The notes under the pieces are model-generated. The model made no database searches. It saw only the letters and a list, made by a program, of their open reading frames with translations, and was not told the DNA's origin. Shown one piece after another: positions 2,966 through 62,429 of a stretch of DNA of 64,000 nt. The position numbers and the translations under genes are program-made. This stretch comes from Saccostrea echinata. Lineage: Eukaryota. The DNA is taken from the NCBI RefSeq assembly GCF_033153115.1, contig NW_026889750.1:2232001-2296000 (forward strand), given 5' to 3'. Each line of letters begins with the position of its first letter. Within the stretch, counting starts at the first letter, position 1.

Positions 2966-3001
2966 TCATTGGTTGAAATGTATGAAGTTATCACTATTAC
3001 A
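2966..3001 (-). CDS. Gene B last exon (visible 3' end): CNSDNFIHFNQ*
   Basis: The CN that terminates an LU-type domain lies immediately beyond the gap; stop TGA at 2968-2966. Confidence 0.7.
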   Translation of the reverse strand, partial: CNSDNFIHFNQ

Positions 3002-6000
3002 NNNNNNNNNNNNNNNNNNNNNNNNNNNNNNNNNNNNNNNNNNNNNNNNNNNNNNNNNNNNNNNNNNNNNNNNNNNNNNNNNNNNNNNNNNNNNNNNNNN
3101 NNNNNNNNNNNNNNNNNNNNNNNNNNNNNNNNNNNNCCTTTTAAAGGTTTTTGGATAGGCAGTTCCGTCATGAACAATGTCAGTCATGCAAAAATGTTCA
3201 TCCGATGCACAGTTCTGTAAATTTCCCAAGTAGATTGTCCTCGTATCACAGGAAATAGATGAATTAGCGTCTCCACATGTATGGCACTTTCTGATGACTT
3301 TGATAAATAATGTAAGAATTTAAAACGCATATTTCTATAGATTAGTTATTAAAAATGTTATGAATAAAAACTAATAAAGAGAAGTTTACAAAACTCATCA
3401 TCATTCAGTAGTAATCATTATGATACACGAGACATCAACAATAACGTTTAAAATCAACATTTCGCCAATTCCATAGTAGTTTTAATAACCTTGTTTGCGA
3501 CTGAGTCGAAATGTTGAACTTATGTTTATTATAAAAATAATTAGGCCATTGTTTCATACTGACTTGCTATCGATTAGCTCTTTGTGTCCTCCGTAAATGA
3601 TAAAGTTTGAAATATTGTATAATGATGCATGATAATGGTTATTTTGTTTCATGTCTTAGGAAAGGCAGAGATTGACCAATCAAAATTTAACAATGAAAAT
3701 TCCGGCCACGTGGCGTGTCACTATGCCTCTTCTGCAGTCTTGGAGACTGACGTTTATTTAAGTTTGTAATTTATTTTATCGCGTATTTGGTGAGTAAAAT
3801 TATTCTAGCATGTCCTCATTGGTAAAACTTCGGTCGTCATTCTTGGTCACTCAATTGTGCGTCGTTTTCACGAATTTTTGAAACATGGTGATAATATTTA
3901 GATATTCAACAGGGTTCTCCATCATTTCAAATTTAACTGTGGCACAAGACTTACGCGAAGTGCTAATATTCACGGTCATTTCGCGACCGATTTCGTGAAG
4001 GAACCACGAAATAAATTGAAAAATACACAACCCAATGAATCAATGGTTTAATACGCAACTGACATTTATTATTTGGCAAATTGATCATTAAAATTAATAA
4101 AAAAAATAATCAATCGATATCGATTAAACATGCATGTAGTGTAAAAAAAAATGTCTACAAAATATATGCATACTGTCGAAAAGACACCCCCAACACATAC
4201 GTACTTATAAATAAACAAATATTAGCTTATAGAATCTGAAAATTAAAGTACTAGTAACAACAAGTGTTAAGCATTAAACCCTATTTTTTAATAATAATAA
4301 TAATAATAATACTTTTTTTTGCAAAAGACAAATTAAAGTGTTCATTAAAGGACAGGTGAAATTCTGGTAAGTCACACAATCAAGCTTACATCAATATATA
4401 TATTAATTTTGCAATTATCGGTCTAAAGACCGAAATAAAGTAAAACTTGTGAATTAAAAAAATACTTAAGCAGTTTAGAGACATACAATAATATTTTGGT
4501 GGATCTATCGTTAATTTTTCAACATTACAAATATACATGATTACGATACACATGCGATGTGTGACTCCAGTGCCAATGCAATTTTAGAGACGTTGTTATC
4601 TGTAGTACTATTCAAGTGAATTGATTAATATAAAATTTTCATTAGCAATTATCGTGAAGTGTGGAAAAAATGGCTTGTCTCTTTTTATTTAATTGTCCAG
4701 CGAGGTCTAGAAGATAATTGCTTGTGCAAGCCAATCAATGGGACCTAATTAGAGTAAATTGACGGTTTAGCATTAGAAAATGGAAAAAGGTACATAATTT
4801 TGAGATTCCTTTGGTTTATAAATTTATATATTTATCTTACTGACGACGACGATCTAACTGTGTCGTTAATATTTTAACTGTGGCAGAACTATGGCACTGA
4901 TTTTTTTTAACTGTGTCGCTAAGGAATTTAACTGTGGCGGGGCCGCCACGTTAAATGGCCCATGGAGAACCCATTTCAAACAAATTATTAAATATCACAA
5001 AGTTGTAAACACATGACAAACTGTTTTATAGACTTTTTACTCATTGAAAGAGGATAAAATAAGGTGAAAAGAGAATTATTGAAAGTAATAAGCAATTTAA
5101 TGGGTAGCTGGGCTATCAAAATACTCATTGCATTTATATGAAAAATTATATGAGAGCTTTAAAATTTTTTCCATCGAACACTGTGAATGAAAGAAATTAC
5201 TCTGGGAGGGTTAATATAGCATTTTAGACTGGTATTCTATAAATTGTGAGCACAAGTTTTGTAAGAAGGGAGAGTTCTCTTGCGGTTAACTTTAGTAACA
5301 TTGTAGCAATTGTTAATAATTACCTTCCACTTATTCAGATCAATACTTTGAATGGTTGTTTAAATGTATGTTGCAATATTGAACATTAACAATGATCTTT
5401 TCTATCTCTATGAATTATTACTATGATAATATATACATGACATTTATTTAATCACTGCTTTTTACTAAAAAAGATTTTAATGGTAACCTAACAACAAAGC
5501 TTTATGATAAACGTGATGATTTCAACTTTTTAATCGTCAACTTCCCTTACTTATGTGGCAATATAGCCTTATCACACTGCATATTAGGTTTATTTCTCTC
5601 AGTTGATTCGATACGCAAGAGAATTATCTACGTATGAACAATTTCTACAACGAGGTAAGTCATTGACAAACAAGTTGATGACACAAGGATATCAACAGTC
5701 TCGTTTGAGGTCATCAATTTGCAAGTTTTATTGTCGATACAATGAACTTGTCTGCACACATTTTCTCCTTTGATTGGAATTTGAGGAATCTTATACCGGA
5801 CTGTACATTTTTACCCTGATTCAACTTAAAACTTTACAAATATATAGTAATTTAACAACTGAGCTGTTGAAATTTGTGCAGCAATACCAGCACTCCTTGG
5901 AATATTTTGCTTCTATATATACCTTGTTTCAGTTAAATAAAATAGAGCACGGTCTTGCACCGAATAATTTTTGTTAATGTCCTTTATAGTCTTTTGTAGT

Positions 6001-9000
6001 AAAGAACAATGACGTCATAATTTGACGTCATAATGTGTACTGCCTATGTAATGTCGTGGGTACCAAGTATGTTTACCAATAAGTTTTAACTTTCTCTGTA
6101 TAATGGATATAGTCCTTAGGCATTTTAATTAGTTTATTTGCATAGAAATGCCTATTCCTAGCCTTAACTTACTTGCGTAATAGATAGGCCATTATTTATA
6201 CACTGAACCGTCTACGGATTTTTCCGGGTTTTTTTTGTTCATGACAAGGAGCACACGGCGGCAGGGGATGCTCACTCTTCCATGGCACTTGATTCCACCT
6301 CTTAATTTTGAGGTCCGTGTTTGCTCTGCTCCAAATTTGTATCGTTTCATTGGACCATACGGAATGAAATGGATTTTAAGATTTCTTGTGACTTTTATAA
6401 ACCTTCCAAACACATAGGTACCTGAGAATTACCCATTTAAAGTTTATTTCACGCATTATATGTTCCGCCCAAAATCTCAGGCGGAACGAGCTCGTTAGAA
6501 AATGGCCTTCGGATGTAAGAGTCCGAGGTATATAAGGAGCGTAGGGACTTTAACCGAGGCTCTTACTTGTAGGAGTAACCCGTCGTGTGCTCCTTGTCAT
6601 GATCAGAAAAAACGGAAAATTCCGTAGATTATTGTAAATAATGGTCTTACAATTAGTATGAAAAAGTTCAGCCAGCATTCGACTTAAAGATAGACTGTAT
6701 TTGCTGACAATGTCATTGTATCGACCATAGAACTTGCAAAATGATGACTTTAAACGAAATTTTTGATATTCTTGTTTCTTCTACTTGTTTGTCAATAGCT
6801 TGCCTCGTTTTAGAAATAGTTCGTACGCAGAGCTAAAACCACCTTATTATGCGGTAGACCTGTCCGCTATGTCAGTGGCTTGTAGATACTTTGTTGATTG
6901 ATTGTCTTTCTGAGTTTCTATTATTGGAAGTGCCTCCTTTTTTACCTTTCATAAGAGTATTTAAGGAAAGTAAACATCTTTTTACCTATTCTACAAGGAA
7001 AGGTAAAATGATGTCATACATGTTTTGAATGTTTTGAACATGTTAGTTCTTGTCAAGATTATAGTTACTTTTATGCAAATTTGAAACTGAATTTACACAA
7101 ATCTATCCTCCAATCATAGCTGTAAACTCTCAAGTAGGAAACAAACTTCAAATAAAAGGGAAATGAAGTTGACATTTATCTAAGGTAAAGTCGATATAAC
7201 TTGACGACTGAATTAAATGTAGTTTTGATTCAATATTTTTACCTTATGTGGAAGTTATACTCTTGCATAATTTTTATTTGTTAGCATAATGCAAGCTAAC
7301 AAAATACATATATATCTTTTATGTGAAGGCAAATATTATATTCAATGGATCTATGAAGAAGGTGAATATAAAACAAGAGGCCCATGTGCCACATCGGTCA
7401 CCTGAGCACATTGGCTAGGAAGAAGCAGAAATCAGTTCAGTATTGAATGGGACGGTGGGTGGGGGCACTCTTTAATTTAATTAAACTTTAATTTAAACTA
7501 CCTCAGGATACTTCCGTATCAATATTACTTTTCATGGCTAAATTTGCTCTTCTTAAAAGAAGAATTTAAAACTTTTTCCCTATGCTTTCCTATTTAAAAC
7601 TCTGATCTCTCATTGTGCTCCCACCCTACACACCCTAAATTTGAAAAAGATTTGAATCTTCACTACCTGAGGATGCTTCCATATATATAAATATGACTTA
7701 TCATGGTTTTGCTGTTCTTGAGCAGATGAGTTTTTTTTTCAATATGAGTCCTATATATTCTTACTCTGACCCTCTGTTGTCCCCCCAAACCCCTGGGGTA
7801 ATAATTTGAACAAACTTGATTCTACAATTACTAGGGTTGTTTCTGTATAAATATGACTTATAATGGCCTAGTTGTTCTTGAGGAAAAGATTTTAAACATA
7901 TTTTCTATTTAACATGTATGATCATGTTCTTACAAGGAATATAGAGGTTTTCCTTTTACTCTGTCTGAGTTAATGATTGGAATGATTTTTAAGAAACCTC
8001 TTTCTGAGGGTATATCACATAGTACTTAACTTATTTAACTCGTATCTAGAGATGAGTACTGGGTAAGGTACTACTTGCACCGTGTTTTTCCCTAGGTTCC
8101 TATTGATAGATAAGAACCGGTGTTTTGAATCTTCTTCAGATTTACTACACACAGAACTTAACATAAATTCCTTAGGACACTTGCCACTGGTGTTTATAAC
8201 TTTTATACTTTTATTTTGCTCTTACCCTTAGGGTTTTCCAACCCTAATAGGACCAAATTTTTTATCCTTGAATCACATACTACTCTAAATATTAATTTAA
8301 AGCATTTTACAGTAGAAAAGGATTTACCAAGAGAAAGTTTCAAAAATGTAATTAACTAAACAGTAATTAATAAAAAAAAAAAAAAAAAAAAAAAAAAGAT
8401 TGCATTGAAGTGTATGGGGACAAGCGATTTTTTAAAAATAAAAATTCAAAGAATAAGAATATCAATAAATACTCTAGAGGAAAGATGCATTAAAATAGAA
8501 TCGCAATCGAAAACGGTTTTTTACCAGACAAGTTCTTTTAAAATTTACTTTTTTATTAATTAAACACACAATTAAACTCTTACCAAAATAATTTAGGACA
8601 CATCCCACCCTTACAACCTAATAATAATAAATGGGAATTATGTCTAAATATACTCAGTATTCAACCCCAACACATCTGTATTCAATTTCTTTGAATCTGT
8701 TGCTATTTGGGATATAATACCTTAACTTCTTTATTGTTGATTCTACATCCAACTTCTTCAGCTAGCTTCTGAATGCCAGACCTTCCCAAAGCTTTGCCTT
8801 ATATACCCTTTGGTTTGGCTAGTCCATTCCAATGGTTGTTAGGTCATTCCACTATTTGAAGTCTTCAATGTGTTTTACTCAAATGCCCCTTAACCATTAC
8901 ACCTTTATATTCCTATGTAAAACTTTGACCCACTGCTTTGGCCCCGCCCTACCTCCGGAGGTCATGATTTGAACAAAATTGAATCTACACTACCTGCATG

Positions 9001-12000
9001 AGGATACTTCTGTATTGATATGACTAGTAATGGCTTAGCTTTTCTTGAAGAGAAGATTTTTAAAGATATTTTCTATATATTCCTATGGTAAAATTTGACC
9101 CCCTGTTTTGGCCTTGTCCTACCCCCAGAGGTCATGACTGGAACAAACTAGAATCTACACTACCTAAGGATACATGTACTTCTATCATAATATGACTAAT
9201 CATGGCTTTGCTGTTCTCGAGAAGAAGATTTTTTAAGATATTTCCTATAAATTCCTATGTAAATGCTACGATTTATGATTTTGATATTTAATGTCACATG
9301 TTTTTATCGACATGTTGTAAATCCGAGTTTCCTTCATTAATTGGGAACGTTAAGATAACAAATAATCTTATACGAAATTTACACATAAACAGGCATTTCC
9401 CATAAACGTAACCGTGTGAATAACCTACTATTTATGTTATTCCGACATTATAAACAGTCGTATGATCCTCCAACTGACATAACTCTAATTAAGGACATAC
9501 GCAACATAGTTTGAACTTTATTGTCTTTTTCCCAGGAGTTGAAGAGTTCCAAAACTTAAAAGAACTGTGTGCTACATTTTAATGTCTATATATGCTATTG
9601 TACACTTCTTCTAAAACAAGTTTGGATAAACAAAACATCTAGAATATATGTTTAGTAATTTTTGTATATTTTTCTTTGATTAATACAAGAATTTTCATCA
9701 ATTGATATCTTTTCAAAACCCCTGGTAATGCATGCTGATTTTTTGTATACGAACATCTAATGACACTATAATCTTAAGTTAAGAATATCTTGAAAAATTA
9801 TCAGTAGGTAAGGAACGTTGCGTATGTCCTTAAAGCGGATCTGGCATTGTTTTTAAATACATCGATATCGCTTAGCACGATAAACTTCCGGTGCAGGTCA
9901 CATTGCGGGAAAAGGGGGGGGATCGTTCGTCATTTCTCTAGCAACGTAATACGATATAAACAGCGGTCAGATGGTCATCAGGAGCATTCTGCTCATTGCC
10001 TCAACTGACGAGAACGAACTAAAATTTGGGAATATGGAAAGCAGATGGGTAATTAATTAATTTATCATTTCTTACCCAGTGGTTCTTGAGAAATATTTTT
10101 TTAAAAGATGCTACCAAATCTTCACGAATTCTTGATTATCTCCCCTTGAAAGAGGATGCGGTACTTCCTTAGAACGAATTGAAATCTCTTTTATCCAAGG
10201 ATGCTTTGGGGCAAGTTTTGCTAAAATTGGCCAAGTGGCTCTTGAGAAGAAGTCGAAAATGTGGAAAGTTTACAGACAGACGCCGGACACTCTTTGATCA
10301 GAATAGCCGAGAGCTAAAGAAGCTAAAAAGCGGTCAATGATTCAATGTTAATAACAATACAAATCCTGGACCTTGAAAGTCCAGACGTGGGATCAGGTGC
10401 CTAGATCTATACAAGACACCATGTTTGTTGAAGTATTTGCAGTACAAACTTGTGTTTCTGAAGATGTTATTGCTGATATATATACCTGTGTATGTTGTAG
10501 GACGATTATTCGATGATGTAGTAGTTGGTGGTACAGATCCTGTGCTTGTTGATGTTTTTTCTTCAGTTATTTGGGTCGTTGCTGTTTTCATTGTCATTGA
10601 TTGCGCCGTAGGTGTAGAGTCTAATAGAAATAAAAAGAGCTTAGCGGTTCCTCTGATTTTTCTTAGAAAGTAATAGTTATAACATTTTTTAATATCTTAA
10701 AAATTGCCGAACAATTTTGTCGATCTTTTTAAATAAATATGTATGATTTTTGACGAACATAAATTACAAGGGATGCATTTTGGAAATTTGAGGGTCTACC
10801 CATAATTACAAATTTTTCACAAAATTAAAGCCTCCAAAACGGATGAATAGCAGCTTAAGTACTTCTCAAATTCTTGATAATGCTTATATAACAAACAAAT
10901 CTCTGAAGCAATTGAAGATTTAATTGAATTAAAGACATGCATTGACATATTTACAACTATAAAATAATACTTAATACTGCTTCATTTCTAGTCATTTGGA
11001 AACAAATATAGGGCTATTTCTATTTAAAGCATTTTATAATATTTTTTTCAATATGGATATAATTCATTAGCATATTACTGCTGAAAAAATTCAGATTACT
11101 GTAAAATCACTTAGACTTATTTTGGTTGGGTCAGATTTTCGTGCTTTGACGAATAAATGTAGGTTCGTTGGGATTTGATTTCGTGGTTGAAGAAATGTAC
11201 TTTGATTGTACCTTGCCATTTTTACATTTCGTGGAGGACAACATCAATTAAACTCTCACGATAATAAGTGATTTCACAGTATTTATTCTAGTGAAGAATT
11301 GTGAAGGTGGAATTTGTAAACCTATAATGTTTAGAACAGACATTTTATTTGAACATTTTAAACTTGGACTATATCATATCTTAATCATTTTAGTTATTAA
11401 TAGTGAACTTAGTAGTGACAGTAAAATAAAATAAAAGGTTATGAAACAAGGATGTACAGTATTAGTGTACCACATACAGTGACTTTATAATTGGAAAAGG
11501 GACTTTATGTTCATGAACTATAATTATCTTGTTAGAACAAATTGAATTTTGTTGTTGGTACAATGAACTATAATTTTGTAAATCATTTTATAATGGAATT
11601 GATCAAATTAGACCAAACAAGTTCATCGATACCAAGTAATAAAATTTTAACGGAAATGCAAAGTTACTATTAAGATTCTTGACCAAGAGTAATAAAATTG
11701 GGAACTTTAAAGTAGATAAGTAAAAGAGCTTAGGGCTAGAACTCCTGTGGTGCAGAGATTGGAACGGAGTCCATAAATATTATTAAAGTAGGTATACCTG
11801 GATTGGAGGGTGGTGCCATGTTGGGGTTCATAGGTCAACGGACAGACCTACGGACAAAGCGTAGGTGACATGGCAATGGTAAGACAGCCAATGAAAAGTA
11901 TTTTTATATCCCGGACCATGAATACCCTCTGAGCACAATATACCCTGTTTTGCCGAAAAATTCTTTGACTCTTTTGGAATACTTTTTGGACTCTAATTTT

Positions 12001-15000
12001 TTTGGACCTCACCTTAATTATTACTTTTGGAGTTTTAATTCTACGCTCTTCTTAAATATTTGGGAAGGATCTTTAAAACTTTTGCTAGGTTTAATAAACT
12101 TTTCAAAAAACTGACAAATTTTGTTATCGGCTTACACCTGCTAAGTCAATTTGGTGCTCGTTGACCGGGATTTGTGAAGTACGAAGGATACATGTAGCTA
12201 CTATTGAATAATACAGTAAGATCAGAGACACTTAAGGTGAGACAATTTCTCTTTTCTACTTAACTTTTTAGATGCCCATGTAAATCAAAACTTAATTGAA
12301 TTTCCTTGTTAAATTTACGCAATAAGCATCAAATCCTAAATTAAAAGGAAATTATTTCATGCATTTACAATGGCAAAGGCTCCAACACACAGGGAACAGC
12401 TTAATCGAGCATTAGAAGAATTAACTCAACAAATGTCTGAAACAGAAATGTTAAATACGAGAAATTTGGATGAAGAAAATGAAAAACATGAAAGTTCAGG
12501 GTACTTTCCTGATGGGGGCAAAAAGAATGAAAATGGAGATGATGATGATAAAAATATAAAATAATAAATGAATTCTATTTTAAACCAGGTTAAATCATTA
12601 ACCGCGGCCATTTCAGTACCCATTAATCAGGTCATTACCTATTTTGAGGGGAGTCCTACAAATTTCAAACAGTGGATTAAAGATATTGAGAAATACGCAA
12701 AAATGTCAAACATGGCTGGTGAAGATATTCCAAAAATCGCGTATGTAACATGTAAAGGGTCTGTGGGGGACTTTGTTAAGAGATATTTGACAGAAAATTG
12801 AAGTTTCGAGTGAATTACCTAGTTTGAATGACTTAAAACATCTTTTAAAAAGTCGATTTGCAGTAATTACTGACCCCCAACACGCATTGGCAATTATGAG
12901 AAAAATGAGACAAACTTCCAATGAGAGTGTGCAAGTATTTGCCGAAAGGTTATTACAGGTAGCGGAAGATGCATATTCGCCTGAAAAATCAAAAAATCAA
13001 ATTGTTCAAAATCAGTTGGTTGACATATTTAGTGATGGTATGTTGTTTGATTTTGTGAGAATGAAATTATATTATTACGGAGAAATCCAAAAACTTTTGG
13101 AAAACGCAGTTCAAATGGCAATGCATGAACAAAAACTGCGTACTAAACGTTTGGCATTAAGAACAAATGACACACTTAATGACTCCTTGTCGCATCACCC
13201 TTTGATAAATAAGTCAATTCCAAATTTATTTGAAACTCCACATTTTCCAGAAGTCCCATCTCGTGAAATTGAACCCATGGAAGTAGATCACTTCCGCAAT
13301 CAGCACTGTCACAGATGAGGTAAAGTAGGTCACAGAGCAGAATTCTGTCATGCACAAGTTTTTACGAATAGAAAAAATATGGGAAATCAAAGGAACAGGT
13401 CACGCATAAATGAAATTTCAAAAACACCAAACAGGGGGGAATACAATTTACAGTGTTGGCATTGTGAAAATTATGATCATATTAGCGGACATTGTCCTCA
13501 GAGATATTCTGGCCGTTTCGATAGGTCGTTTAGACACAGGCCTACATATTACTACTCAAAAAGAAACCCAACCCAGCAGGAAAACTAAGACACTCTCTTC
13601 ATGTTGAAGCCGATGGAGAGGGGGACAAAACTGTGGTAGAAAAAATGTATATAAGATTTGTTTAACTGGAAATCCAAGTTCTTGTATTATGAAATTGGGG
13701 AAAATGAGATATAGGGCATTAGTAGACACTGGGGCTGAAGTTTCGCTTATTAGTAGAAAAATGTATAATAATCTATAGGTCAAACCAGCTCTGAATAAAA
13801 AAGAAAAACCATATCTGCAGGCTGCAAATGGTGAATCACTTTCAGTGATAGGTAGAGCAGACTTAGCATTTTCTATGAATAGGTTACCATGAATCATACA
13901 TTTTATGTTACAGAGGGACTCGATCGTTGTGTCATTTTAGGACGAGATTGGTTAAAAGCGAATGGGGTCAGAATATATTTTGATTTAGGGTGTTTGAGAG
14001 TTGAAAAAACATATGTAAAATTAGAAGATCTCCATATCTCATCTTTAGTGAGAATAAATAAGAAGGTTTTAATAAAACCGCAAATTGCAGTTGGATGTTA
14101 CGGAAAATTAAACTCCGCCTTTCCAAGAAAATATGAAGGGTTGATAGAGATTAAAAATTTACATGACTGTCTTAATGAGGAACCCGGTTTAATATTTAAA
14201 GAGTCAGTGCGTGTAATAAGAAACACGCGTAAGGTGCCAATCATGATCATAAATCAGTCTAACCGCGCGTATCAATTGAAGCCCGGGAGCGCTGTATGTA
14301 CAGTTCGATCTGTTTACAAAAGAGAGATAAATGCAATAAAAACAGCGGGGGAGATAACAAACTTTAAAACATTGCTGTGACGTCATGCCTATGTTCTTGC
14401 AATCTAAAACATTACCTGTAGCCGTCCGATAATAGTCATTACCTGTCCAATAACATATTATCGGACGGCAGTGATAACAAAATCGGACAGTTTTAAAAAA
14501 CAACATGTAGAGTGAAAACAAGGTTTATTATGTCTAGAAAAAAAAGTTGGGGGAAAAACAAATTTAGGGAAAGCAAACGAAAGGAAATTAAGTTGCTACA
14601 AAATACCATGCAAATCCATGAAGAAGAAAATGGAGTTTTAACCCTCCTTAAAAGTAACACTTTCCATTGGTTTTTATGCCCCCGTATCGAAGATTCGGGG
14701 GTATATAGTTTCTGCCCTGTCCGTCCGTCTAGCTGTCTGTTTGTCCGCAAAAACTTAACATTGCCCATAACTTTTGATTGGTTGGAGCTATGGCTTTCAT
14801 ATTTCACATGTGTATTCCTTGTGACAAGACCTTTCTTTGGGTACCACCATATTTGATCTTTTGACCTTGACCTTGGAGTTTGACTCAGTTTTGCAAAATT
14901 TTATCCACTTTTAACCTTGGTCATAACTTTTGTAACCGTTGGTGCTAAGGCTTTCATACTTCACCTTCACCCTAACGGGCCTCAAACAGTCTGATAATTT

Positions 15001-18000
15001 TACATATAGAACAGTATTCGGCATATATCCATTACATACATTAGACTTAAACGAAGTAGATGCGTCCGAAAAATATAAATCCTATACAAGGCAACTTGTA
15101 CAACGTAACAAAGATCTGTTTGCTAAAATGTATAGTGAGTTAGGGCACACTAAAACTGTAACAATGAAAATAGAAACTGGTGACCACCTCCCAATAAAAA
15201 ACAGACCTTACAGAACTCCGCTAAACAAAAGACAAATTATTGATAAAGCAATTGATAAAATGCTTGATGCAAAAATCATACAATGATCACAATCGCCGAG
15301 GTTTTTCCCGTTGGTAGTAGTTGGAAAAAAAGACGGAACGCAAAGAATGTGTGTAGATTTTCGGTCATTAAATAAAATTGTAAGACCAGCATCCTACCCA
15401 CTTCCGCTAATAGATGATATCCTGAGTTTATTGGATAAATCTAAATATTTTACTACACTAAATCTTAAAAGCGGATATTGGCAAGTTCAACTGCATTTGC
15501 TTGTCATAAAGGTTTATTTCATTTTAACAGAATGCCTTTTGGTTTAAGTAATGCACCCGCAGTATATCAAGAGCTTATAAACATTTTTACAAGGATGCGA
15601 AAAATTTGCCATTGCCTATCTCGACGATATGTTGTCATTTTTTCGAAAACACCTGAAGAACATCAAGCCCATATAGAGGAGATTTTCGGAGAATTTTGCA
15701 GCATGGTCTTAAATTAAAATTAAAGAAATGCAAATTTTCCAGGAAGAAACAGAATACTTAGGTTTTGTTATAGGCCCGGAGGGGGTTAAACCTGATGAAA
15801 AGAAAATAATGGCCATTAGAACATTACCAGCGCCAACTACAGTAAGGGAGGTTAGAGGGTTTATTGGCATGTGTAGTTATTACCGACGTTTTTTTCCCAA
15901 TTTTTCAAAAATAGCGGAACCTCTCATAAATCTTACAAGAAAATATGCAAGGTTTAATTGGGACGAACAATGTCAAATTGCATTTGATTTTCTTATGGAA
16001 AGTTTGACTGTTGTACCTTTGTTAGCAGACCCGGATGTAAACAAACCGTATGTACTTTACACTGATGCTAGTGAAAATTGTATTGGAGCGGTTCTTACAC
16101 AGCAAACTAATGAGGAGGAGGAAAAACCCATATATTATCTCTCGCATAAGCTTAGTAGTACTCAGACTAGGTGGTCCACAATAGAGAAAGAGGCATTTGC
16201 TATTCATTACGCATTACAAAAGTTAGATCATTATTTGCATAACGCCACTTTTACTATAAAAACTGACCACAAACCATTAAAGTACCTATTAGATGCCCCC
16301 ATGCAAAATAAAAAGATACAACTTTGGGCATTAAGTATAGCAGGTTACAATTGCAAAGTACAGTACATTGAGGTAGATATAATTGTTGTGCACATTTACT
16401 TTCCAGACTTCCGTCTACAATTAGTAAGGAAAATGATGAGGGAAATGAGGAAGACAATGAAACAGATGTAAATGAAAATGCTTTTGAACTCAATGTGATT
16501 AATTCTAACAGAATCGAACCCAAGAAATTTGCAAGTTGTGAATTATCGGTACCTGATGATTTAATAAACCATTTTTAGAACTACCAGAGGGTATTGATAT
16601 TCAACAATTACAAAATTCAGATGAGCAGATAATGAAATTGAGGGAAAAATTTAACAAGGGAAAAGCTACTCAATTTGAAGAAAAGAAATTTATAGAAATT
16701 GATGAATTGCTTTATTATTTGTCAGATGGTGATTCAGAGTCACCAAAATTGAGATTATTTATCCCAGCAGAGTTAGAAGAACTTACTCTAAAACAATATC
16801 ATGACAATTTAGGGCATATGGCTGTAGACAAGACCTATGATGCTATCCGACAAAAGTACTACATTCCCAATCTTTATAAAAAGTTAATCAGTTATATAGA
16901 AGAATGTGTTATTTGACAGACTAGGGGTGCTAGAAAAAGTCAACCTCCTGTGCACGAGACGTAAATTCAACCTTATCCTTTTGCAAAAATCGCACTTGAT
17001 TTGTCAGGTCCATACCCGACTACTTTGTCTGGAAACAAGTACATCGATTCATTGGTTAGATATTTACTCGGGGTGGCCGGAAGCATTTAGTGTCTCAGAT
17101 AAGTCCGCTGAAAATATAGTACATATAATTTTGGACGAGATCTTTCCAAGATACGGGTGTCCTTTACAGCTATTAACAGACAATGGTACTGAAAATGTTA
17201 ATAAGGCGGTAGCAGAAACACTAAAGGAATTGAATATTCATCACATTACTACTTCTTATTACAATCCACAGGGTAACGGGAAGGTAGAAAGGTTTCATCG
17301 AACTCTGCATGATGTAATGGCTAAAAAGGTTCAAGAAGATACACAAACTTGGGATCTTTATATAAACCAAACACTAGCTGCCATTAGGTATCACACCAAT
17401 GAATCAACTAAATACTCTCCTTTTTATTTATTGTATAACAGGGATGTAGTTTTACCATTAGATACTATATTGAAGGAGGTATTTGGGGGAGGATCAACAA
17501 AAAATTGCAATTCAACAGCAACATAAGGCATTTGTAAATGTTTACATAAATTTGAAAGAGGCAAAGCATAAACAGAAATTACGAGCCGATAAAGGGAGTA
17601 AAGAAGAAACTTTTCAAATAGTTGACCCTATTTATTTAAAAAATAATCGGAGGACTGGTAAGCTAGATAAAAAATGGGTACCCTATTACCGCATTGTTGA
17701 ACAAACAGGTCCCGTTAGCTTTGTTGTTAAAAATCAGTTAAATAATACCTCCACTAAAGCTCACGCAAGGCACCTTCATCATGCTCGAATTAATGAGTGA
17801 GAAATTCCACAAAATTCTGGAGAACGCACCTTAAGACAAACTCAGTATGTAGTACCCCCAGAAAACGAGTCTGATAGCGAAAATTCTGAACAGGAAGTAG
17901 AGCAGCCAGCCTTACAAAGAATGATAAATAGAAAACGAGTCGAACGCGAAAATTCCTCTGATGAAGACGACATCCCGTTACAAGAGTTAAGGAGGAGAAT

Positions 18001-49804: not shown

Positions 49805-50235
49805 CATTGAATTGAGTGAGTATTCATTGATTGAACTGATTGATTGACTATTGATTGATTGAATATTGGTTGATTGAATATTGATGGATTGATTTGATGA
49901 TTGATTTATTGATTGATTGAACTGAATATGATTGATTGATTATTGTTTGGCTTAAACATAAACTTACAACAATTTATTGAATTGAGTGAGTATTGATTGA
50001 TTGAATTGATTAATTGAATTGATTGGTTGAATATTGATTGGATTGAAAATTGATTGATTCATTGATCTGAATATGATTGAATGATTGAATTCCGTATTCT
50101 TTTATTGATTGAATATTCATTAGTTGATATGAAAAAATGGTTGATGAATTGAACTGGATATTGATTGATTGAATGAATTCTTATTTGAGTATTGGTTGAT
50201 TTATTAATTGAATATTGATTTATTGATGAATAATT
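49805..50235. repeat. Degenerate (ATTG)n microsatellite
   Basis: Direct reading. Confidence 0.9.

Positions 50236-51614: not shown

Positions 51615-51617
<3 letters not shown>

Positions 51618-51650
<33 letters not shown>
51618..51650. repeat. (GA)n microsatellite
   Basis: Direct reading. Confidence 0.9.
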
Positions 51651-51652
<2 letters not shown>

Positions 51653-54379: not shown

Positions 54380-54478
54380 CTAATTTATTCCTAGGTAACT
54401 TCTTAAGCAATCTCTGTCACTACAACAGAAGATTTCCGCATCCGATAGAACATTCTTCATGAAACTGCAGTCTTCTTT
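54380..54478 (-). CDS. Gene A last exon (KEDCSFMKNVLSDAEIFCCSDRDCLRSYLGIN*)
   Basis: tttttgacag acceptor, phase 0, CCxxxxC motif, TAG stop. Confidence 0.88.
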   Translation of the reverse strand, partial: KEDCSFMKNVLSDAEIFCCSDRDCLRSYLGIN

Positions 54479-57400
54479 CTGTCAAAAACACAGCATTTTA
54501 ATACTAAGTAAGTGCTCCATTGTTAGCATTATGATGTTTTATTTAATAGATTTATATCAATACTGTCTTTATTTTGTGGATTCGCAGTTAAGATTTTTTT
54601 ATCTGCTATTTTGTAGGTATCGATAAAATGTAAATCTCCATAGATAACATACATAGAAACACTCTTTGTGCCATGCAGTTCCCGATTTATTCTACACAAA
54701 ATTATCCTGAATAAATTAGATAAATAACTACCAACATGGTAGAGGTTAATTTACACGTCACCTAGCACAATGAAATTACACACATACCAAATGAATAAAC
54801 AATGTATGTCAAAGCCTTAACTAAGTTGAGTGTTTTTTGTTTTTTTTTTAAATTTAAGATATGGCTGATTGGTTCATCAAATATCATGCTGAAGAAGTTT
54901 AAATATTAAATTTTACGTAGATAAACGTATAACATATTACTCTTATACAATGCGTGGTAAACTTAGTTCCTGGATATTGTCGTATCATACAAATCTCTTC
55001 CGGATAACATGTCTGGTTCCATACACAGTTTAATTCTTCATCGCATGTGGGACACTGAAAACCTATAATATCAAAAAAAAAAAAAATGTCTGCAAACTCT
55101 TTTTCCGATTTAATAGGGAAAAAAAAACAGATGAAAACTGGACAAAATATGATCAGAACAAGGTAAAAAGGTAACATTTTGTTTTAGCTAAGGCTTCCAA
55201 ATGCCAAATGCACAAGATAAAAAATTTATNNNNNNNNNNNNNNNNNNNNNNNNNNNNNNNNNNNNNNNNNNNNNNNNNNNNNNNNNNNNNNNNNNNNNNN
55301 NNNNNNNNNNNNNNNNNNNNNNNNNNNNNNNNNNNNNNNNNNNNNNNNNNNNNNNNNGAACAAGATTTTATTTTTAAAAATATGAACTGGGATATTATAT
55401 ATATATGACGCGTTTTTGCTCTTGTGTTGAATGGAAAAGCAAACAGTAATCGATGTAGATTTGTTTTCATGTGTCAACAATTTCTTTGATGCAAATGTTA
55501 CAATGTACCTGTTAATTTGGACCACTGTGTAAGATTTCACAACTATAGATTTGATATTGTGTACAATCTTCAATTAAATTTTGATTTTTTTTTTAAATGT
55601 AAGATGTTATTGAAGCTTTTAAGTATTTTTTATTCAATTGTTTTGTGAAAAATAGTATCAGTTTCTTAAATACTTAATTGCTAGATATTTTTAAAAACGG
55701 TCGCTGCTAGCTAAGAAGCTTTGCTCTCTCTACTTTTAGTACTTGGGTTTTACCATCTGTTGTTGTTGCTGCTGCTGCTGTCGTTAAGCTTATTGTTGTT
55801 ACTGACGTTGTTCTTGTCGTTGTTTCTAAATGTCAATAGAAAGAGAAATTTGCTGATACAACTGGAAACTAACACCAAATTCTTCTAGAACAATGCTTTA
55901 TTTTTTTTTCATTTCACACTTATGTGTGCAAAAGAGGATTACTAATAAGCTGTTGGTTCTGTAAAAATGATGCATCCTACATATTGAAAATATTAATTGA
56001 TTTCAAAGCGATAAAAACATCTTAAAAAATCTTTATCCTACAGAATGATGACACCATTAATTGTCATATTGTTTTCTGTATATCGTAAAAAAATTCTCCT
56101 AACTGGGTATGAAATGATAATGAATTTGAAAAAAAAAGACCAATACTAACTTAAAGATTTAGTTCTAATCACTGTGAAGAAGGTCAACCTATCACGGAGT
56201 CTAAAAATACGTAAAATATGGTAGTGTTCTGTCAAATTTTTGACATCAAGTAGTCATATCCCGTAAATATTTTTTGCGGTATAATATGACCGCAGAATTA
56301 AAATCTCAAAAATTAATTGGTTACCTTTTAAAGGTCAGATCGCCAAAAAATTCAACCGCAGAAAATACCAAATATACGATAATTCTCACTGCTTCTTAAC
56401 CGTCACTTTAGTCTAATAGTAGGACATTCGCTTTGTGATCCGGAGGCCCGGGTTAAATTCTTGCTAGCCGCACCGAGTCAAACCTAAGACTTAAACATAG
56501 GTAGTAACTGTTCCTTCGCTAATCAATTTCATAAGTGAAAGTCACAGGTCTTTAGGATGAGACCTTAAAAACCAGGGTCTCCTTTCACGGTAGGCGTTGG
56601 CACGATAAAGAACTTTCACTGCTCAATGGCGCTCAATACCGAGAAAGGATCTAAATATATCCCTTCACCGGAATGTGGTGACTTCTGTACAAGAGTGAAA
56701 AATTTTCGAATCGGACGTAAACAACATTCAATCAAACAACCAATAATCCAATTTCATTGTGTTTGTTAAGACTTTCATTGAGTACAAGTTAAAGTCAACA
56801 GCCCGAAGTTATGACAAAGTAAATATTAGAGCGATAAAAATAAAACCTAGGATTGCTTATTTATAACAAATTAAGGGGGCATCAAATGTTTTTGGAAAAA
56901 GTTTGAAAAATGCCATTTGGAAGCATATTTAATGTATGAAGCAATCTTGCAAATTCAGCTGTAAGTTATATTCACATATGGGAAGCGAAGTTAGTCAAAT
57001 AACGATCAATCGTTTGAAATAAAATGTAGATAATGATGAGTTCAGAACATTTTCATCACATGTATGAATTTGATCAAGATTTTTGGATTTTTCAGCGTGT
57101 TCAGCGAGAGGTATAAAATAAAAATAAAATATTAATAAAAAAAAAAACACTGAAGGACTGGCCAAGAAATATGTGAGCAATGGCGACGTTTTGTCATTTA
57201 AATTGTACATGGTATACACATTTTATACCATAATATCTGTTATATGAATCCAATTCAAAAAGTTTGATTTTAAATATTTGAGCTGAAATGTTATTAACTG
57301 TATTATTAAGTCTTTGGATATAAACTGTTAATTTTTTCATGATTGATTGATTGATTCTATATTGTTTTACGTCCCATTCGAGAATTTTTCACTCATATAG

Positions 57401-60400
57401 AGACGTCACCATATACCGGTGAAGGGCTTCAAATTTTGACCTTTACTCGGCACTCAGGGCCATTGATCAGTGAGGGATCTTTATCGTGCCAACGCCTGCC
57501 GTGACACGGGGCCTCGGTTTTTAAGGTCTCATCCGAAGGACCCGCAACTTTCACTTCAAAATGCCGAGCGCATGGCGAAGGAACAGTTGCTACCTATTTT
57601 TTATCGACTTAGGTCTGTCGCGGCCGAGATTCGAACTAACGACCTCCCGATCACGGAGCGAGCGCTCTACCGACTGAGCTACCGTGAACGGTCAATTTTT
57701 TTCATTACAAAAGTCAAAACTTAAAAACTTTTCAACATGAAGCGATGTGTAACTAAAACTGTCCATATAGTTTCTTGATGTCGTAGATATCGGTAATTAG
57801 ATGTATAGTGAAAATACCACCAAAAAACACAGATCTGAAATACCCAAAAAGCGACATTGTCCATCTGAACAGAACAGTGGGCAATCCTAAAATGCCGTCG
57901 GATACGAAGTGAATAATAGAATTACATGTATAAGAGGAATTATTGGAACATTTCAAGCTCATTGTATTAGGTGTGTTATAAATGGATTTTTGATGGTGTG
58001 AACAATTTGAGAGACGCTGCAAGAAATGGAATATCATTTTTGTAATTGAACTGAGAATTCATGACGAATTTGCATATCCACCATATTTAAACATTTCCAT
58101 GATTTAACCAATGTAAACATGCTTTGAAATTTGTATTGAAACAATGTCATGAATATGAAATGCGTTTTAAATATGTAGTTAAAACTGAAAGTAAATACCT
58201 ATTAAATACTTAGAGTAATTATGTAGTACCTGCGATTTCGTCACACACGCAGCTGTGTGAATTTTGTAAAAAATCAAAGTGACATCTGCCAGCCGAACTT
58301 TGAGGACAAATACAATGCTTGTGTTCCGTGCAAACTAAAACAAACAAACAAATACCGACAACGAAAACTTCTCATAAAACATGTTTATGAAGAAAAAAAA
58401 AAGATTTTGAGATTTTCCAGCATTTTTGTCAGAATTGATCAGTAAAAATGGACAATAAGTTTTAAATTAGTGTTCACAATTTGGAGTTCTGGACAAAAAG
58501 ATCTTTCCTTCCTGATAATGACTCTTTAAAGTCAATCAAAAGTCCAGATTTATATTCCTTATTTTCTGTATTATTGTTTAAAACAGCAATTACATGTAAC
58601 TGTCGAATAATATTTCACTTACAAAATGATTTTAAACCATCTCCTATTTCTGAAAGTATTTTGTGTGAACTAAAGCTGTATTTGTTGACTTTGTTGAATT
58701 TCGGTGCCAAGGCAATATTATCAGCTAATTACTTTATACTGTCATATTTCTCCACAAGAGAAGATTTAAACAAATAGTTTGTTCATAAACTTTAAAAAAC
58801 TTTTATTCAAATTACTAGTCTTGGATGTTTTGAAAGGCATAAAAGGGAACGGTGAACAATTTTTCTGATTTGTATCTCAAATGGTTAACCTACTCTTATG
58901 AGGAATATAATTATTAAATACTGTCAATTCAGGTATTTTGAAAAAAAGAATACATTTACCTGTGCATTGACATGTTGAAGAATGTTTATCAATATTGCAG
59001 TAAGGATGTTTATGAGAGGGGCAGACGTGGTCACTACAGTCAGTATGATAATGACATGTTGAAAGTGTTGTAGGAATCTCTTCGGTTGCGATTGATGCGG
59101 TTGGCGTACCCACTGGCTTGCGAAAATAAGCTGAATTAACAAATTTGATAAGGATGTTTAAATCTTAACTTAAAGAAAAAAGTATTTTATAAAATAAACA
59201 TGTCTCTTTTTTTTCAATTTCAGTGAATCGCTGAATTGCTCATCTTAATTTTTTCTTTAAAATATTCTGATAACAAAATATACATACATGAATTCGTAAA
59301 ATAAAAGTTGTTTTAAGGGGCATAGACACGTGTTTACATCCTTTAAAATTCTCGATAGAATTTCATGACCTCCATGTTGTTAGAGAGTTTCAGCAAGTGT
59401 GTCTATGTCCCTTTAAGGATGACGTTCACTCAAACGACGAAAAAAAAATCCACTGATAGAAATGAAAAACGATCTATTGTACATTTTAGACCTATGATTG
59501 TAGTGTTGTTTTTCACTTTCAAATAACTAAGTTATGACTGAAATGCGTTCTGTCTGCGTTTCTTCATCCGTTTGACATCCGTTGGAGCTATCCGGTAAGG
59601 TGTGACTGAACCCGTACGCTATGAGCAATGTTTTCTTTATTAACAAAGTATAACAAGTAACAAAAGTTTCTGGACAATGAAATACAATGAAAGTGTGGTT
59701 TTTAAAGCATAGAATCCAATTTTTTCTTCACACGGATTGAGATGAAACTAAAACTATAGGACAGCAAGTCACTCAAATGTTTTCATATACATTCATTTGC
59801 TGTCATTTTGTGTGGTTTCCCCTATGTTGGTTACCAATTTTCAGATTTTCTTCGGATGGTAAAAAAAACCCAAGAATTTTGCCTGATAAAAGTAAAAATG
59901 ATCTCGCAGTCGAATAAAATCGCCTATACGATTGTTCTGAGTTGCAATGCCTACCCAACATTTTTACATCACACAAGTGCATGTACGTGAAGATATTTTC
60001 ATCTTGGTACAAAGGATTTGATGTGAATAAAATGTGAATCTTAGTATTTTATTAACATGTGGTGATAAAAATACCACAAAAATGGCCTTGACGTGACATC
60101 ATATTTGACGTCGTCAAAGGGGAGTAACCAGAATTTTATGATTCTGTAAATTCTTCGAGTTGTCTTTCAAGGAAACGAGGGAATTTTGTTAATAATTCAT
60201 AGCTCTATAGAAAATTTCGAAATATTTAATTTCAATCATTGTATCCTGGTATTTATTCTTTTAGTTTTGTTTTTCACTAGTAAATTCATTTCACCATGCA
60301 TCGGACACAAATTAACCATGCATCGGACGTTGTCCATTGTGGATAATTTACTTCCTTTGTCGTATAGAGATACGTGTATAATACCCATATGACAGTTCCT

Positions 60401-62429
60401 TTTGCAGAAATGAAAAAAATAACTCAATACATTCAGTGTAAATACAATATATCGAAAACTAAAAATGGGCTCTTCTGTATTAATTATATCTTCACACTAG
60501 AATACAATAGCTTCCGAGAGCAAGGCGGAAGTTGCCATATGACGAGGCATGGAAGGGCCTTTCTAAGGCAATGTAATGCGACCATAATCTCTCCACATTT
60601 GCGAATCGATAAAGTCAATCAAATTAAAATAGGGAGTTGATTTTTAAATGAAGCTTAAAAATTTCCTGTCTGTAATTTATAAGGGTTTCAGATCTTTTAA
60701 AGGCCACTGCGATAAAGGAAATTAAAGAGATTATCCGGTTTAGTATATTGTTTGTACGATGCAGTGGTGAATATTGTCCGATCTATGGTGAATTCTGGCT
60801 CATTAAAATCGTTTTTAATGATATTTTCTCAATAAATAGCATTAAACTGTCTCAAATTCATATTTTCATCACGAAATACATGTTAAGCTCCATTTCGATA
60901 CATTCGGTTGTTAGCAATATCGCTTATATTTGTTGCAAGTACGAGGGTGCCCGATGCATGGTGAACTAACCCTAACTATAAAATTAAATTATTATCAAGT
61001 TATTCACATTTATAGATATTATTTACCTTCAGTCGTCGAGGCTAAAAGAAAATATATTAGAAGAATTCGATTACTGTATACACATACACAAATACTGTAC
61101 ATGTATATACTGTATAAACAATATACACATTTGTGAAAAGGGTGAAGATAACGAACAGTGATCGATCTGTGAACAGGGCATAAGACACGGACTCCTGGTC
61201 ATTTCAGAGATGGCATAGATGCCTAGGAGAAGAAAGCATCCCCTGTCGACCGGTCACATCCGCCCTAAGCCCTAATATCGATCAGATAGATGGCATTTTC
61301 CGTAGTCAAATTTAATATAAAAGCCAAGGCCTAGCAATTTGTATGAAAAACGTCATCCAAAATACGACTAAACGATAGATCACATTTGCTTAGCAAAATT
61401 GCATTTCAAAACATGATAACCAGAATATTTCTAAAGAAATGTATAAAAAAAAAAAAGAGGAGAAATTAAAGAAAATATAAAAAATTAATTGTCATTTTGG
61501 TTATTATTTTATAGTTTCAGTAACTTCGTTCTTTTAATGTCGTTTAATTAAATCTACAATACTTTGAAGTTATTCTCTTTTTAGGAATTATTTACCTGTA
61601 GTCGTCGGAGCTAAAAGAAAATATAGTATTGGAAGAATTTGATAACAGTATCATATAAACAGAATATAAATTTATCTTAGAAGAATTGAATTAAAAACAT
61701 GATTAACATGCAGAATTAAAAACAGAAGAGACCAAAATTTTTAAATTTCCTTTCATTTATTTTTTTCTACTTTTATTCACTTTATGTTTTTAATGTCATT
61801 CATATTTTTCCTTACATATTAATTTTTTTCTTTTATTGAAACATTTACCTTCAGTCGTCGTAGCTTAAAGAAATTAATAGAGGAATATGATAAACAATAT
61901 CAAATCAACAGTATATATATATCTATCTTAACAAAATTTCATTTGAAAACATGATTAGCGGAATAATTCTTTCTAGAGCAAATAAAAATTTAAATCAAAA
62001 TAGAAAAAAAAGAATATACCAAAATTTAAAGAGATTTATTTCGATTTATGCTATTTAATGTTAGTTACTTAATCTTTTTAATGTCGTATCTATAGCTAAA
62101 TATGTAATATTAGGAAGTTATTCAAATTTTTAAAAATGATATACCTGTAGTCGTCGGAGCTACAAGAAAATATGTTAGAAGAATTAGATAACCACATCAT
62201 ATAAACAGCATATAGACATGTACAGGTTTCCTAGCAAAATTGCATTTCAAAACATTACTAACATAATATTTGTATAAAGAGTAGAATTAAAAACAGAAGA
62301 AACCAAAATTTAAAATTCATTTATTTATTATTTAATCATTTAACTCTATCTTTTTGATGCCATTTATATTTTCCACAGATTATGAATTTTTTTTACTGAT
62401 AATATATTATATACCTTGAGTCGTCTTAG
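54380..62429 (-). CDS. Gene A (3' part; 5' end beyond window): Thr-rich microexons, 6-Cys module pair, Thr/Ala linker, three-finger (LU-like) domain
   Basis: Exons 62429-62415, 62159-62145, 61863-61849, 61610-61596, 61041-61027, 59112-58960, 58334-58230, 55825-55754, 55062-54941 and 54478-54380 are all GT-AG, phase-compatible and free of internal stops; AATAAA on minus at ~54305-54300. Confidence 0.85.
54941..55062 (-). CDS. Gene A exon (GFQCPTCDEELNCVWNQTCYPEEICMIRQYPGTKFTTHCIR)
   Basis: 122 nt, phase 1-0; with the next exon gives a 10-Cys LU-like pattern. Confidence 0.88.
55230..55357. other. Assembly gap (128 N)
   Basis: Run of N. Confidence 1.
55754..55825 (-). CDS. Gene A exon (ETTTRTTSVTTISLTTAAAATTTD)
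   Basis: 72 nt, phase 1-1, GT-AG. Confidence 0.85.
56400..56745 (+). mobile_element. tRNA-derived SINE (old copy)
   Basis: Decayed tRNA head, GGCACGATAAAGA core, GAGTGAAAAATT..GGACGTAAA and (CAAT/CAAA)n tail. Confidence 0.75.
57341..57693 (-). mobile_element. tRNA-derived SINE (Meta-type core likely)
   Basis: A box GGTAGCTCAGTCGG, B box GTTCGAATC, (CAAT)n tail, TSD AATTTTTT(T)CAT. Confidence 0.9.
58230..58334 (-). CDS. Gene A exon, 6-Cys module type b (CTEHKHCICPQSSAGRCHFDFLQNSHSCVCDEIA)
   Basis: 105 nt, phase 1-1; same C-x5-C-x-C-x7-C...CxC pattern as gene B type b. Confidence 0.88.
58960..59112 (-). CDS. Gene A exon, Thr linker + 6-Cys module type a (GTPTASIATEEIPTTLSTCHYHTDCSDHVCPSHKHPYCNIDKHSSTCQCT)
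   Basis: 153 nt, phase 1-1; shares DC..HVCP....PYC...CxC with gene B type a. Confidence 0.88.
59317..59412. mobile_element. Tiny TTAA-flanked MITE
   Basis: TTAA|GGGGCATAGACAC ... GTGTCTATGTCCCT|TTAA. Confidence 0.65.
61027..62429 (-). repeat. Tandem array of five 15-nt microexons in ~250-300-bp intron-exon units
   Basis: tttcttt(t/a)ag- or ttcttgtag-type acceptors, C(C/T)nnGACGACTnnAG exons, gta(a/t) donors; in transcript order they encode AKTTQ, APTTT, ATTTE, APTTT, ASTTE. Confidence 0.9.
61135..61385 (-). mobile_element. Penelope-like 3'-end fragment in a microexon intron
   Basis: GAAAAGGGTGAAGATAACGAACAGTGATC...GCCTAGGAGAAGAAAGCATCCCCTGTCGACCGGTCACA is the reverse complement of the family's 3' motif. 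Confidence 0.75.

Follow-up and report, generated by a model that had tools for sequence, protein, structure and literature searches.

Two head-to-tail genes of Saccostrea echinata as probable members of an oyster-restricted family of exon-built proteins with six-cysteine modules and a three-finger domain

What kind of genes, if any, are made from a long series of very small exons on one strand of an oyster genome? The question is raised by a stretch of 64,000 nucleotides from Saccostrea echinata (contig NW_026889750.1, positions 2,232,001 to 2,296,000 of the forward strand), which we call the window and within which positions are numbered from its first letter. A first-pass annotation, made from the sequence alone, had seen here two hidden minus-strand genes arranged head to tail, both encoding the same pair of six-cysteine (6-Cys) modules, threonine-rich (Thr-rich) linkers and a terminal LU-like, or three-finger, domain, and had likened the modules to the cvSI inhibitors of oysters (MEROPS family I84). 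Our follow-up confirms that observation in part and gives partial support to its interpretation. We consider it probable that both genes of the window, arranged head to tail, belong to a gene family restricted to oysters, with modular products that are built from exons. One-exon units, separated by phase-1 introns, would follow one another in these proteins in the order signal peptide, zero to several c modules, Thr-rich linker, at least one a-b pair of modules, a mucin-like stalk rich in threonine and serine (Thr/Ser-rich), and a C-terminal LU domain that lacks an anchor signal. Modules a, b and c would be variants of a single 6-Cys miniprotein with a predicted short helix, a beta-hairpin and three disulfides.

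The window has a G+C content of 33%, contains two runs of N (3002-3136 and 55230-55357) and is part of a contig of 53,466,550 bases (C1) in a genome of 923 Mb. All ten matches from a scan for 6-Cys patterns are on the minus strand, and the plus strand has none. Nine of them are modules of the two genes, namely an a/b pair at 59.0 and 58.3 kb in gene 1 and, in gene 2, a single module at 41.9 kb and three a/b pairs between 32.4 and 28.9 kb; the tenth, at 61.1 kb, is probably spurious. Every module occupies one exon of phase 1-1 that is bordered by a polypyrimidine-AG acceptor and a GT donor, and the Thr-rich exons of both genes, as well as five microexons of gene 1, are of the same phase. The picture of two minus-strand genes with small exons of nearly uniform phase, sharing an a/b pair and Thr-rich linkers, is thus borne out. 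Exons were searched singly, and joined products are represented by database proteins.

Exon anatomy of the two genes

Gene 1, which runs from 62.4 to 54.4 kb on the minus strand, is a real gene with spliced transcripts. Its a module, C-x5-C-x4-C-x8-C-x9-C-x-C, shares a phase 1-1 exon at 58960-59130 with a piece of linker, and its b module, C-x5-C-x-C-x8-C-x12-C-x-C, lies on a phase 1-1 exon at 58230-58334. These are followed by a Thr-rich linker exon of 24 codons at 55754-55825 (phase 1-1) and by two exons for the LU domain, the first with six Cys (54941-55062, phase 1 to 0) and the second with four, including the CC motif (54380-54478), which ends in the stop codon TAG at 54382-54380 and has no hydrophobic tail, and hence no glycosylphosphatidylinositol (GPI) signal. 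The a, Thr-rich and LU exons are 100% identical to the RefSeq protein XP_061172197.1 (LOC133181654, "uncharacterized", S. echinata), the a exon corresponding to residues 3-59 and the Thr-rich exon to residues 60-84. The N run at 55230-55357 is an assembly gap between the Thr-rich exon and LU exon 1; it is intronic, since XP_061172197.1 joins these two exons directly, and touches no coding frame. The description of the genes as hidden therefore holds for gene 2, which is unannotated, and fails for gene 1, which already exists as a RefSeq model.

Splicing of gene 1 is seen in contigs from three public sequencing runs (X1-X3, from two studies and under two organism labels) that were mapped to 55700-61699. 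Minus-strand contigs skip from 59130 to 59288, from 58334 to 58960 and from 55825 to 58230, each time with GT..AG ends and at the predicted borders of the a, b and Thr-rich exons; spliced contigs of all three runs fix both borders of the a exon and of the b exon. Because three canonical introns are removed within one record, the contigs represent spliced RNA whatever the label of the runs. The b exon is present in the contigs of three of the three runs, yet it is missing from XP_061172197.1. The longest contig record extends 362 letters past the b exon, beyond the mapped interval, which fits the Thr-rich exon and both LU exons plus some untranslated region (UTR). The junction-aware RNA check that the first-pass annotation had called for favours its exon chain in this gene as far as the a, b and Thr-rich exons are concerned.

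Five microexons of 15 nucleotides each, all of phase 1-1 with AG/GT flanks and all encoding A-x-T-T-x, precede these exons: A-K-T-T-Q at 62415-62429 (where a polypyrimidine tract is also seen), A-P-T-T-T at 62145-62159, A-T-T-T-E at 61849-61863, A-P-T-T-T at 61596-61610 and A-S-T-T-E at 61027-61041. The Thr-rich linker of gene 1 would apparently be made from these units.

Several other features of this region were noted. Compared with the window, the X3 contig has seven substitutions and a 3-nucleotide deletion that cluster at 59065-59097 (minus strand), confined to the linker before the a module, and one more substitution at 59014 within the a module, while its b exon is identical; either a hypervariable linker or a sister lineage would account for this. 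Both module exons can also be read without a stop in a second frame, probably by chance; it would continue from an ATG at 59323, inside an alternative 5' exon that is described below. A repeat of about 350 bp at 57340-57690, in the intron between the b and Thr-rich exons, shows word depths of 2,000-19,000, is matched in each of the three runs by numerous short contigs at 90-95% identity, and is an abundant transcribed interspersed element. A second repeat, at 61130-61280 between microexons 4 and 5, has a contig depth of 117-455 with numerous loose ends; at 62508-62613, 55 bp are duplicated in tandem.

Gene 2 (minus strand, from 43.5 to at most 3.1 kb) comprises a single c module, three pairs of a/b exons, one Thr-rich exon and LU exon 1. 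Its putative first coding exon (43495-43531, phase 1 donor GTAATT) would begin a signal peptide, M-R-N-F-D-V-L-L-V-L-F-T, that by eye resembles the N-termini of the orthologues P0004 and P0008. The c-type module, C-x5-C-x4-C-x7-C-x5-C-x-C, is encoded at 41867-41959 (phase 1-1) and matches the c module of P0004 by tblastn (E 7e-6). The a and b exons, all phase 1-1 with AG/GT borders, lie at 32245-32376 and 31956-32063 (copy 1), at 30735-30866 and 30446-30553 (copy 2), and at 29229-29360 and 28917-29024 (copy 3, the oldest and nearest to that of Saccostrea cucullata); they are followed by a Thr/Ser-rich linker exon of 45 codons at 10486-10620 (phase 1-1) and by LU exon 1, of a long LU subtype, at 3137-3297.

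The order of these exons, a-b-Thr-LU, is that of the S. cucullata protein LOC134262785 (P0031). The a exon of copy 1 is 61% identical to P0031, and the identities for the gene as a whole are 61-62% for a, 67-71% for b, 47% for the Thr-rich exon (tblastn E 2e-6 to the P0031 linker) and 83% for LU exon 1. The agreement in exon order supports the view that the a/b array (29-32 kb) and the exons at 10.6 and 3.3 kb belong to one gene, with an intron of 18 kb in between.

The a/b pair of gene 2 has been duplicated recently, in keeping with the earlier suggestion that these genes grow by exon duplication. Between the two youngest of the three units the introns differ at 16 of 1133 positions (1.4%) and the exons at 5 of 240, and all five exon differences change an amino acid (five non-synonymous and none synonymous, too few to test). 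In the third unit the exons are 8-9% diverged as compared to 20% for the a-b intron, which points to constraint on the exons.

An open reading frame at 40941-41063 with a "CC..D..C" look was dismissed as chance, having no homology, and a microsatellite array of the (ATTG)n type lies between the genes at 49802-50088.

The 5' end of gene 1 and the 3' end of gene 2

The exons described above leave one end of each gene in question. For gene 1, three different 5' ends can be drawn. A piece with a start codon, ATG TTG G, at 59955-59961 fits the "ML" start of XP_061172197.1; it supplies no signal peptide, and contig depth there is nil in the three runs. An alternative 5' exon at 59288-59513, joined to the a exon in contigs of runs X1 and X2 (59130|59288, GT..AG ends), has an in-frame stop eight codons before its donor and would therefore act as 5' UTR or belong to an unproductive isoform. 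Upstream of the a exon, the X3 contig continues for another 347 letters and touches the microexon at 61610 (about 61592-61612) through a weak joint of 21 letters.

For gene 2, LU exon 1 ends in phase 0 ("...KTFKR") exactly where the assembly gap at 3002-3136 begins. In a paralogue (L042), 81% identical in DNA over LU exon 1, the exon ends at the same point, and a last exon of 60 codons comes after an intron of about 680 bp. The left flank of the gap consists of interspersed repeats across most of 1-2623, and 2624-3001 matches none of the sequences with which it was compared. Twelve codons at 3001-2966 (minus strand, "C-N-S-D-N...") had been taken for the C-terminus of this LU domain, and they are probably a chance reading, with no homology in DNA or protein to the paralogue or to the tails of orthologues. 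As no homologue of the last exon was found in 1-3001 or, further left, in the piece L028, that ending is unsupported; the terminal LU-like domain claimed for both genes is thus complete, over two exons, in gene 1, and stands for gene 2 as far as its first exon.

A number of points weigh against the reading of the window as two family members with secreted products. No signal-peptide exon of gene 1 was found in 59.2-74 kb, that is, up to 10 kb upstream of the window end, so that the description of this gene as secreted is not confirmed; its 5' ends at 59955, at 59288 and in the microexon disagree, and two of the three carry no secretion signal. The "RNA?" label of the three runs is only a guess. 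In gene 2, the exon chain is put together from genomic sequence and homology and is to that extent conjectural. Its protein was not found in the protein databases searched, and no homologue of the L042-type last LU exon was found in window positions 1-3001 or in the neighbouring piece L028 (2,220,001-2,230,000), the 2 kb between them lying outside the search. A decayed Gypsy-type long terminal repeat (LTR) retrotransposon (12824-18547, plus strand; Pfam matches to RT_RNaseH, E 3e-35, to the integrase core, E 2e-11, and weakly to the Gag p24 C-terminal domain) lies antisense in its 18-kb intron. Taken together, the missing database protein, the retrotransposon and the missing last exon mean that gene 2 could be a pseudogene. 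The RefSeq isoforms of other oysters that are used below are computed models, and the function of the products we infer throughout.

The strongest alternative is that one or both S. echinata copies are decaying relics, transcribed but without a canonical secreted product. The missing ends just described are what such decay would leave behind: a RefSeq model in which "ML" stands directly before the linker and an in-frame stop in the alternative 5' exon of gene 1, and in gene 2 a last LU exon missing from the assembly; just left of the window, there is also a degenerate module in which cysteines have been lost. Relics would not, however, be expected to keep open frames, six Cys and AG/GT sites in all 15 module and linker exons, nor exons in copy 3 that have diverged so much less than the a-b intron. 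The missing parts moreover coincide with an assembly gap and with an unread 5' region, and the X3 contig has its additional 347 letters upstream of the a exon. We therefore regard decay as a serious but lesser likelihood, and intact family members as the better reading, with the proviso that a complete protein is unproven for either S. echinata copy as long as the annotated gene 1 has no signal peptide and the assembled gene 2 no last LU exon.

The three-finger domain and the six-cysteine modules

The C-terminal domain of gene 1 is, by its structural model, a three-finger fold. It has ten Cys over its two exons, beginning with C-P-T-C and ending with CC-x4-C, after which L stands where N is usual. 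An AlphaFold2 (AF2) model of residues 83-156 of XP_061172197.1 has predicted local distance difference test (pLDDT) scores of 70-83, and in VIA-align searches its first match is Prod1 (Z 7.4, 68 of 71 residues, root-mean-square deviation 2.8). The next matches, at Z 5.0-5.5, include uPAR, PSCA, CD59, snake toxins and SLURP-1, with Lypd6b also among the followers, and the top 50 chains are almost all three-finger or LU proteins. The LU assignment made earlier is thus upheld, for gene 1, by the fold. The first LU exon of gene 2, the only one available, starts with C-H-T-C, and this half of a domain matches Pfam UPAR_LY6 with E 2.5e-4 and 21.9 bits, under the cut-off of 24.8; no UPAR_LY6 match was found for the gene 1 LU exons or for full-length orthologues.

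The modules are harder to place. In an AF2 model of XP_061172197.1 made with an alignment of 8 sequences the a module is unfolded (pLDDT 35-43), and with an alignment of 31 a, b and c sequences (A3) it is predicted with pLDDT 89 as a short helix and a beta-hairpin. The six Cys are invariant in A3, for which the consensus is C-x2-H-x-D-C...C-P-x-G-x2-P-Y-C...C-x-C, and hhalign comparisons link the three types with modest probabilities (a-b E 2e-5, a-c E 3e-5, b-c E 5e-4). Fold searches with the 35-residue module model gave weak and non-discriminating matches to knottins, toxins and defensins with the cysteine-stabilised alpha-beta (CS-alpha-beta) fold, small protease inhibitors and EGF (E >= 4, Z <= 2.6). 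The part of the ESM Atlas search that covered the c module (score 0.78) was uninformative.

It had been suggested that the modules belong with cvSI. The I84 peptides have about 70 residues (about 8 kDa) and twelve Cys in two 6-Cys modules, each encoded by its own exon between phase-1 ("type 1") introns, and they are mollusc-specific and tandemly duplicated (PMC9198434). Their published spacing is C-x5-8-C-x4-5-C-x7-9-C-x4-C-T-C-x6-23-C-x5-7-C-x3-6-C-x5-8-C-x4-C-x-C, and one published motif reads T-C-G-D-V-S-D-C-T-H-V (PMC9198434). Should the modules be true I84 homologues, the proteins would be multi-headed, mucin-tethered protease inhibitors with an LU targeting domain. This plan of one 6-Cys module per exon between phase-1 introns is followed by all a, b and c exons, in a family that is likewise found in molluscs and tandemly duplicated; orthologue c modules, spaced 5-4-7-4-1, agree exactly with each I84 half-pattern, the a modules share a "(S/T)-D-C-x-x-H-(V/I)-C" look with the published motif, and several of the best of the weak structural matches are small protease inhibitors. 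The modules of the window, however, have spacings of 5-4-8/9-9/12-1 (a), 5-1-7/8-12-1 (b) and 5-4-7-5-1 (c), none of which lies within the I84 spacing: in the family at large loop 4 of a has 8-14 residues, and in b loop 2 has one residue and loop 4 has 8-12. No pair of modules and no family protein fits the full 12-Cys pattern, and at 156-687 amino acids the family proteins are far from a single module pair of about 70 residues. An exhaustive profile search with 14 a modules (A1) against 1.84 billion cluster representatives (50% identity) reached no I84-type protein at E <= 0.001, a word search with the a-module alignment among proteins of 31-100 amino acids gave no match at E <= 10, and the structural Z scores, at most 2.6, do not discriminate. 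The cvSI link is consequently not established. We think true homology rather unlikely; judged by sequence, the modules are possibly a distant relative of I84 and not a member.

Another alternative, which we find improbable, sees the modules as antimicrobial or binding peptides of a defensin-like or knottin-like kind that are carried by a glycosylated stalk and do not inhibit proteases. With their predicted helix and beta-hairpin and a terminal C-x-C, the modules recall peptides of the cysteine-stabilised alpha-beta class; Foldseek ranks scorpion toxins (TMq 0.57-0.59) and a plant defensin highest by TM score, and the sole phmmer match against the Protein Data Bank (PDB) is between a c-type module of the orthologue P0004 and the nodule peptide NCR13 (E 0.016). 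The C-x3-C helix motif that defines such peptides is nevertheless absent, its place being taken by C-x4-C or C-x-C, all structural matches are as weak as those given above, and the pairing of the disulfides cannot be read from the model. An EGF or WAP identity, one of the outcomes that would have spoken against the first-pass annotation, is not favoured, as the modules have no Pfam match and the structural scores (EGF by Foldseek E >= 4 and TMq about 0.3, omwaprin Z 2.0) do not rise above those for knottins and CS-alpha-beta peptides.

An oyster family and its known counterparts

What we prefer is a 6-Cys miniprotein peculiar to a family of oyster proteins. The A1 search recovered only eight clusters, all from Ostreidae (S. 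echinata, S. cucullata, Crassostrea virginica, C. gigas and C. angulata) and named "uncharacterized", "mucin-2-like", "zonadhesin-like" or "integrin beta-6". Word searches brought in some 30 further proteins from the same genera and from Ostrea edulis, as well as one protein of Mytilus coruscus that shares the long LU subtype and nothing else. No Pfam family matched the a, b and c modules when single exons and eight full-length relatives were searched. Gene 1 and the orthologues are known as automatic models, while the family, the module and the architecture are uncurated and are not described in the literature that we searched; the earlier view of a poorly described family is supported.

Within S. 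echinata, further module exons lie to the left of the window at 2.157-2.221 Mb on the minus strand, in a plus-strand group at 6.30-6.54 Mb, and on two contigs besides C1. In each cluster, of which about half was read, all module exons are on one strand, the strand of the genes. Genes 1 and 2 would thus be part of a larger minus-strand cluster on C1, with a second cluster about 4 Mb away. Two pieces of the former (L026 and L027, C1:2.18-2.21 Mb, minus strand) contain repeated modules of hybrid spacing, 5-1-7-4-1 (C-H-F/Y-D-H-D-C-x-C...), that bridge the b and c types, and about 11 kb left of the window (L028:665-748, minus strand) there is a degenerate b/c-type module without the C-x-C pair, which represents an exon in decay or else a cluster member that has diverged.

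The proteins of the family consist of a signal peptide, 0-6 c modules, a Thr linker, one to three a-b pairs, a Thr/Ser-rich stalk and an LU domain of either a short subtype (gene 1) or a long one (gene 2). The linkers of the window are short (24 and 45 codons plus the five 5-residue microexons) as compared to those of orthologues, which exceed 150 residues and contain tandem repeats. Orthologue C-termini are hydrophilic, that is, without a GPI or transmembrane tail. LU subtypes and a-b pairs also occur after thrombospondin type-1 repeats in four proteins of C. virginica and C. gigas (P0012, P0013, P0025 and P0028, under names such as "thrombospondin-2-like", "adhesion GPCR B1-like" and "thrombospondin-1 X4"), which indicates that these units have been shuffled as exons between families.

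Variation by whole modules is also apparent among annotated isoforms. For C. angulata LOC128165644, isoform X1 has 494 amino acids, X2 is shorter by precisely the third c module, and one of the two a/b pairs is missing from each of X3 and X4; three C. gigas isoforms show the same pattern, being exactly one c module or one a/b pair apart. These annotation models, together with the one discrepancy between RNA and model over the b exon of S. echinata gene 1, support frame-preserving skipping of whole-module exons, as had been anticipated. The repertoire of products may accordingly be widened both by exon duplication and by the skipping of symmetric exons.

The signal peptides, Thr-rich stalks and hydrophilic C-termini of the orthologues point to secreted, O-glycosylated extracellular proteins, and the products of the window would then be binding or defence proteins of this kind. 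Binding or defence at mucosal surfaces seems the most likely role, to judge from sequence features, and protease inhibition is a minority reading. To our knowledge, oysters are without adaptive immunity and rely on expanded, fast-evolving families of secreted effectors. A bolder proposal, which we advance as a long shot, is that the family is an oyster-specific device for diversifying effectors, in which cystine-dense heads, possibly of I84 type, on O-glycosylated stalks with a three-finger targeting domain are varied through recent duplication of exon pairs (with differences that only change amino acids) and through skipping of symmetric exons, including the 15-nucleotide microexons.

Whatever its role, the family offers a concrete case of how an effector repertoire may be built, being confined to oysters in an exhaustive search and having a main module without a curated domain model. 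It is also a clean example of modular evolution at the level of exons, in which every module has its own phase 1-1 exon, tandem exon duplication is recent and whole modules distinguish the isoforms. Current annotations misname it ("integumentary mucin C.1", "integrin beta-6", "EGF-like comC", "zonadhesin-like"), and the present analysis corrects one RefSeq model for its missing b exon and flags an unannotated neighbour with a 3' end lost in an assembly gap. If the modules were I84-like, a known anti-parasite defence, cvSI against Perkinsus proteases, would be linked to mucin-tethered multi-headed forms.

The nearest counterparts are RefSeq models of the same family (C. gigas LOC105344865, C. 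angulata LOC128165644, the C. gigas "integumentary mucin C.1" isoforms and S. cucullata LOC134262785), which have the same modules, Thr linkers and LU domain in the same order. S. echinata gene 2 differs from S. cucullata LOC134262785 in having three a/b pairs instead of one, and gene 1 has the short LU subtype; the models of other oysters are uncharacterised and carry misleading automatic names. In C. gigas larvae, bacteria induce the "integumentary mucin C.1" gene LOC105319878; no tie between that gene and the family could be established, and it is mentioned as a lead only.

Schistosome micro-exon genes use arrays of very short symmetric exons to encode parts of secreted proteins and so allow frame-preserving skipping. 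Gene 1 has no sequence relationship to them, and only its linker is built in this way, from the five 15-nucleotide exons, the use of which is weakly supported by a single joint of 21 letters. The I84 inhibitors (cvSI-1, cvSI-2 and the razor-clam scSI) are like the oyster family in their restriction to molluscs, their tandem duplication and their one 6-Cys module per exon, and their Cys spacing resembles that of the c modules, with a similar motif after Cys 2; the family differs in its long multi-domain proteins with mucin-like linkers and an LU domain, and the profile and word searches showed no significant sequence link to I84.

Secreted members of the Ly6/uPAR group such as SLURP-1, Prod1 and CD59 have the ten-Cys three-finger fold, much like the C-terminus of the oyster family, which has no anchor signal. 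LU proteins of non-standard architecture are known from other invertebrates, with Kunitz and LU domains combined in cnidarians and C1q and LU domains in molluscs (PMC13719153). The oyster family adds a new partner architecture for invertebrate LU domains, in that its LU domain is combined with a hitherto undescribed 6-Cys miniprotein and mucin-like stalks and, in gene 1, has "CL" in place of the final "CN".

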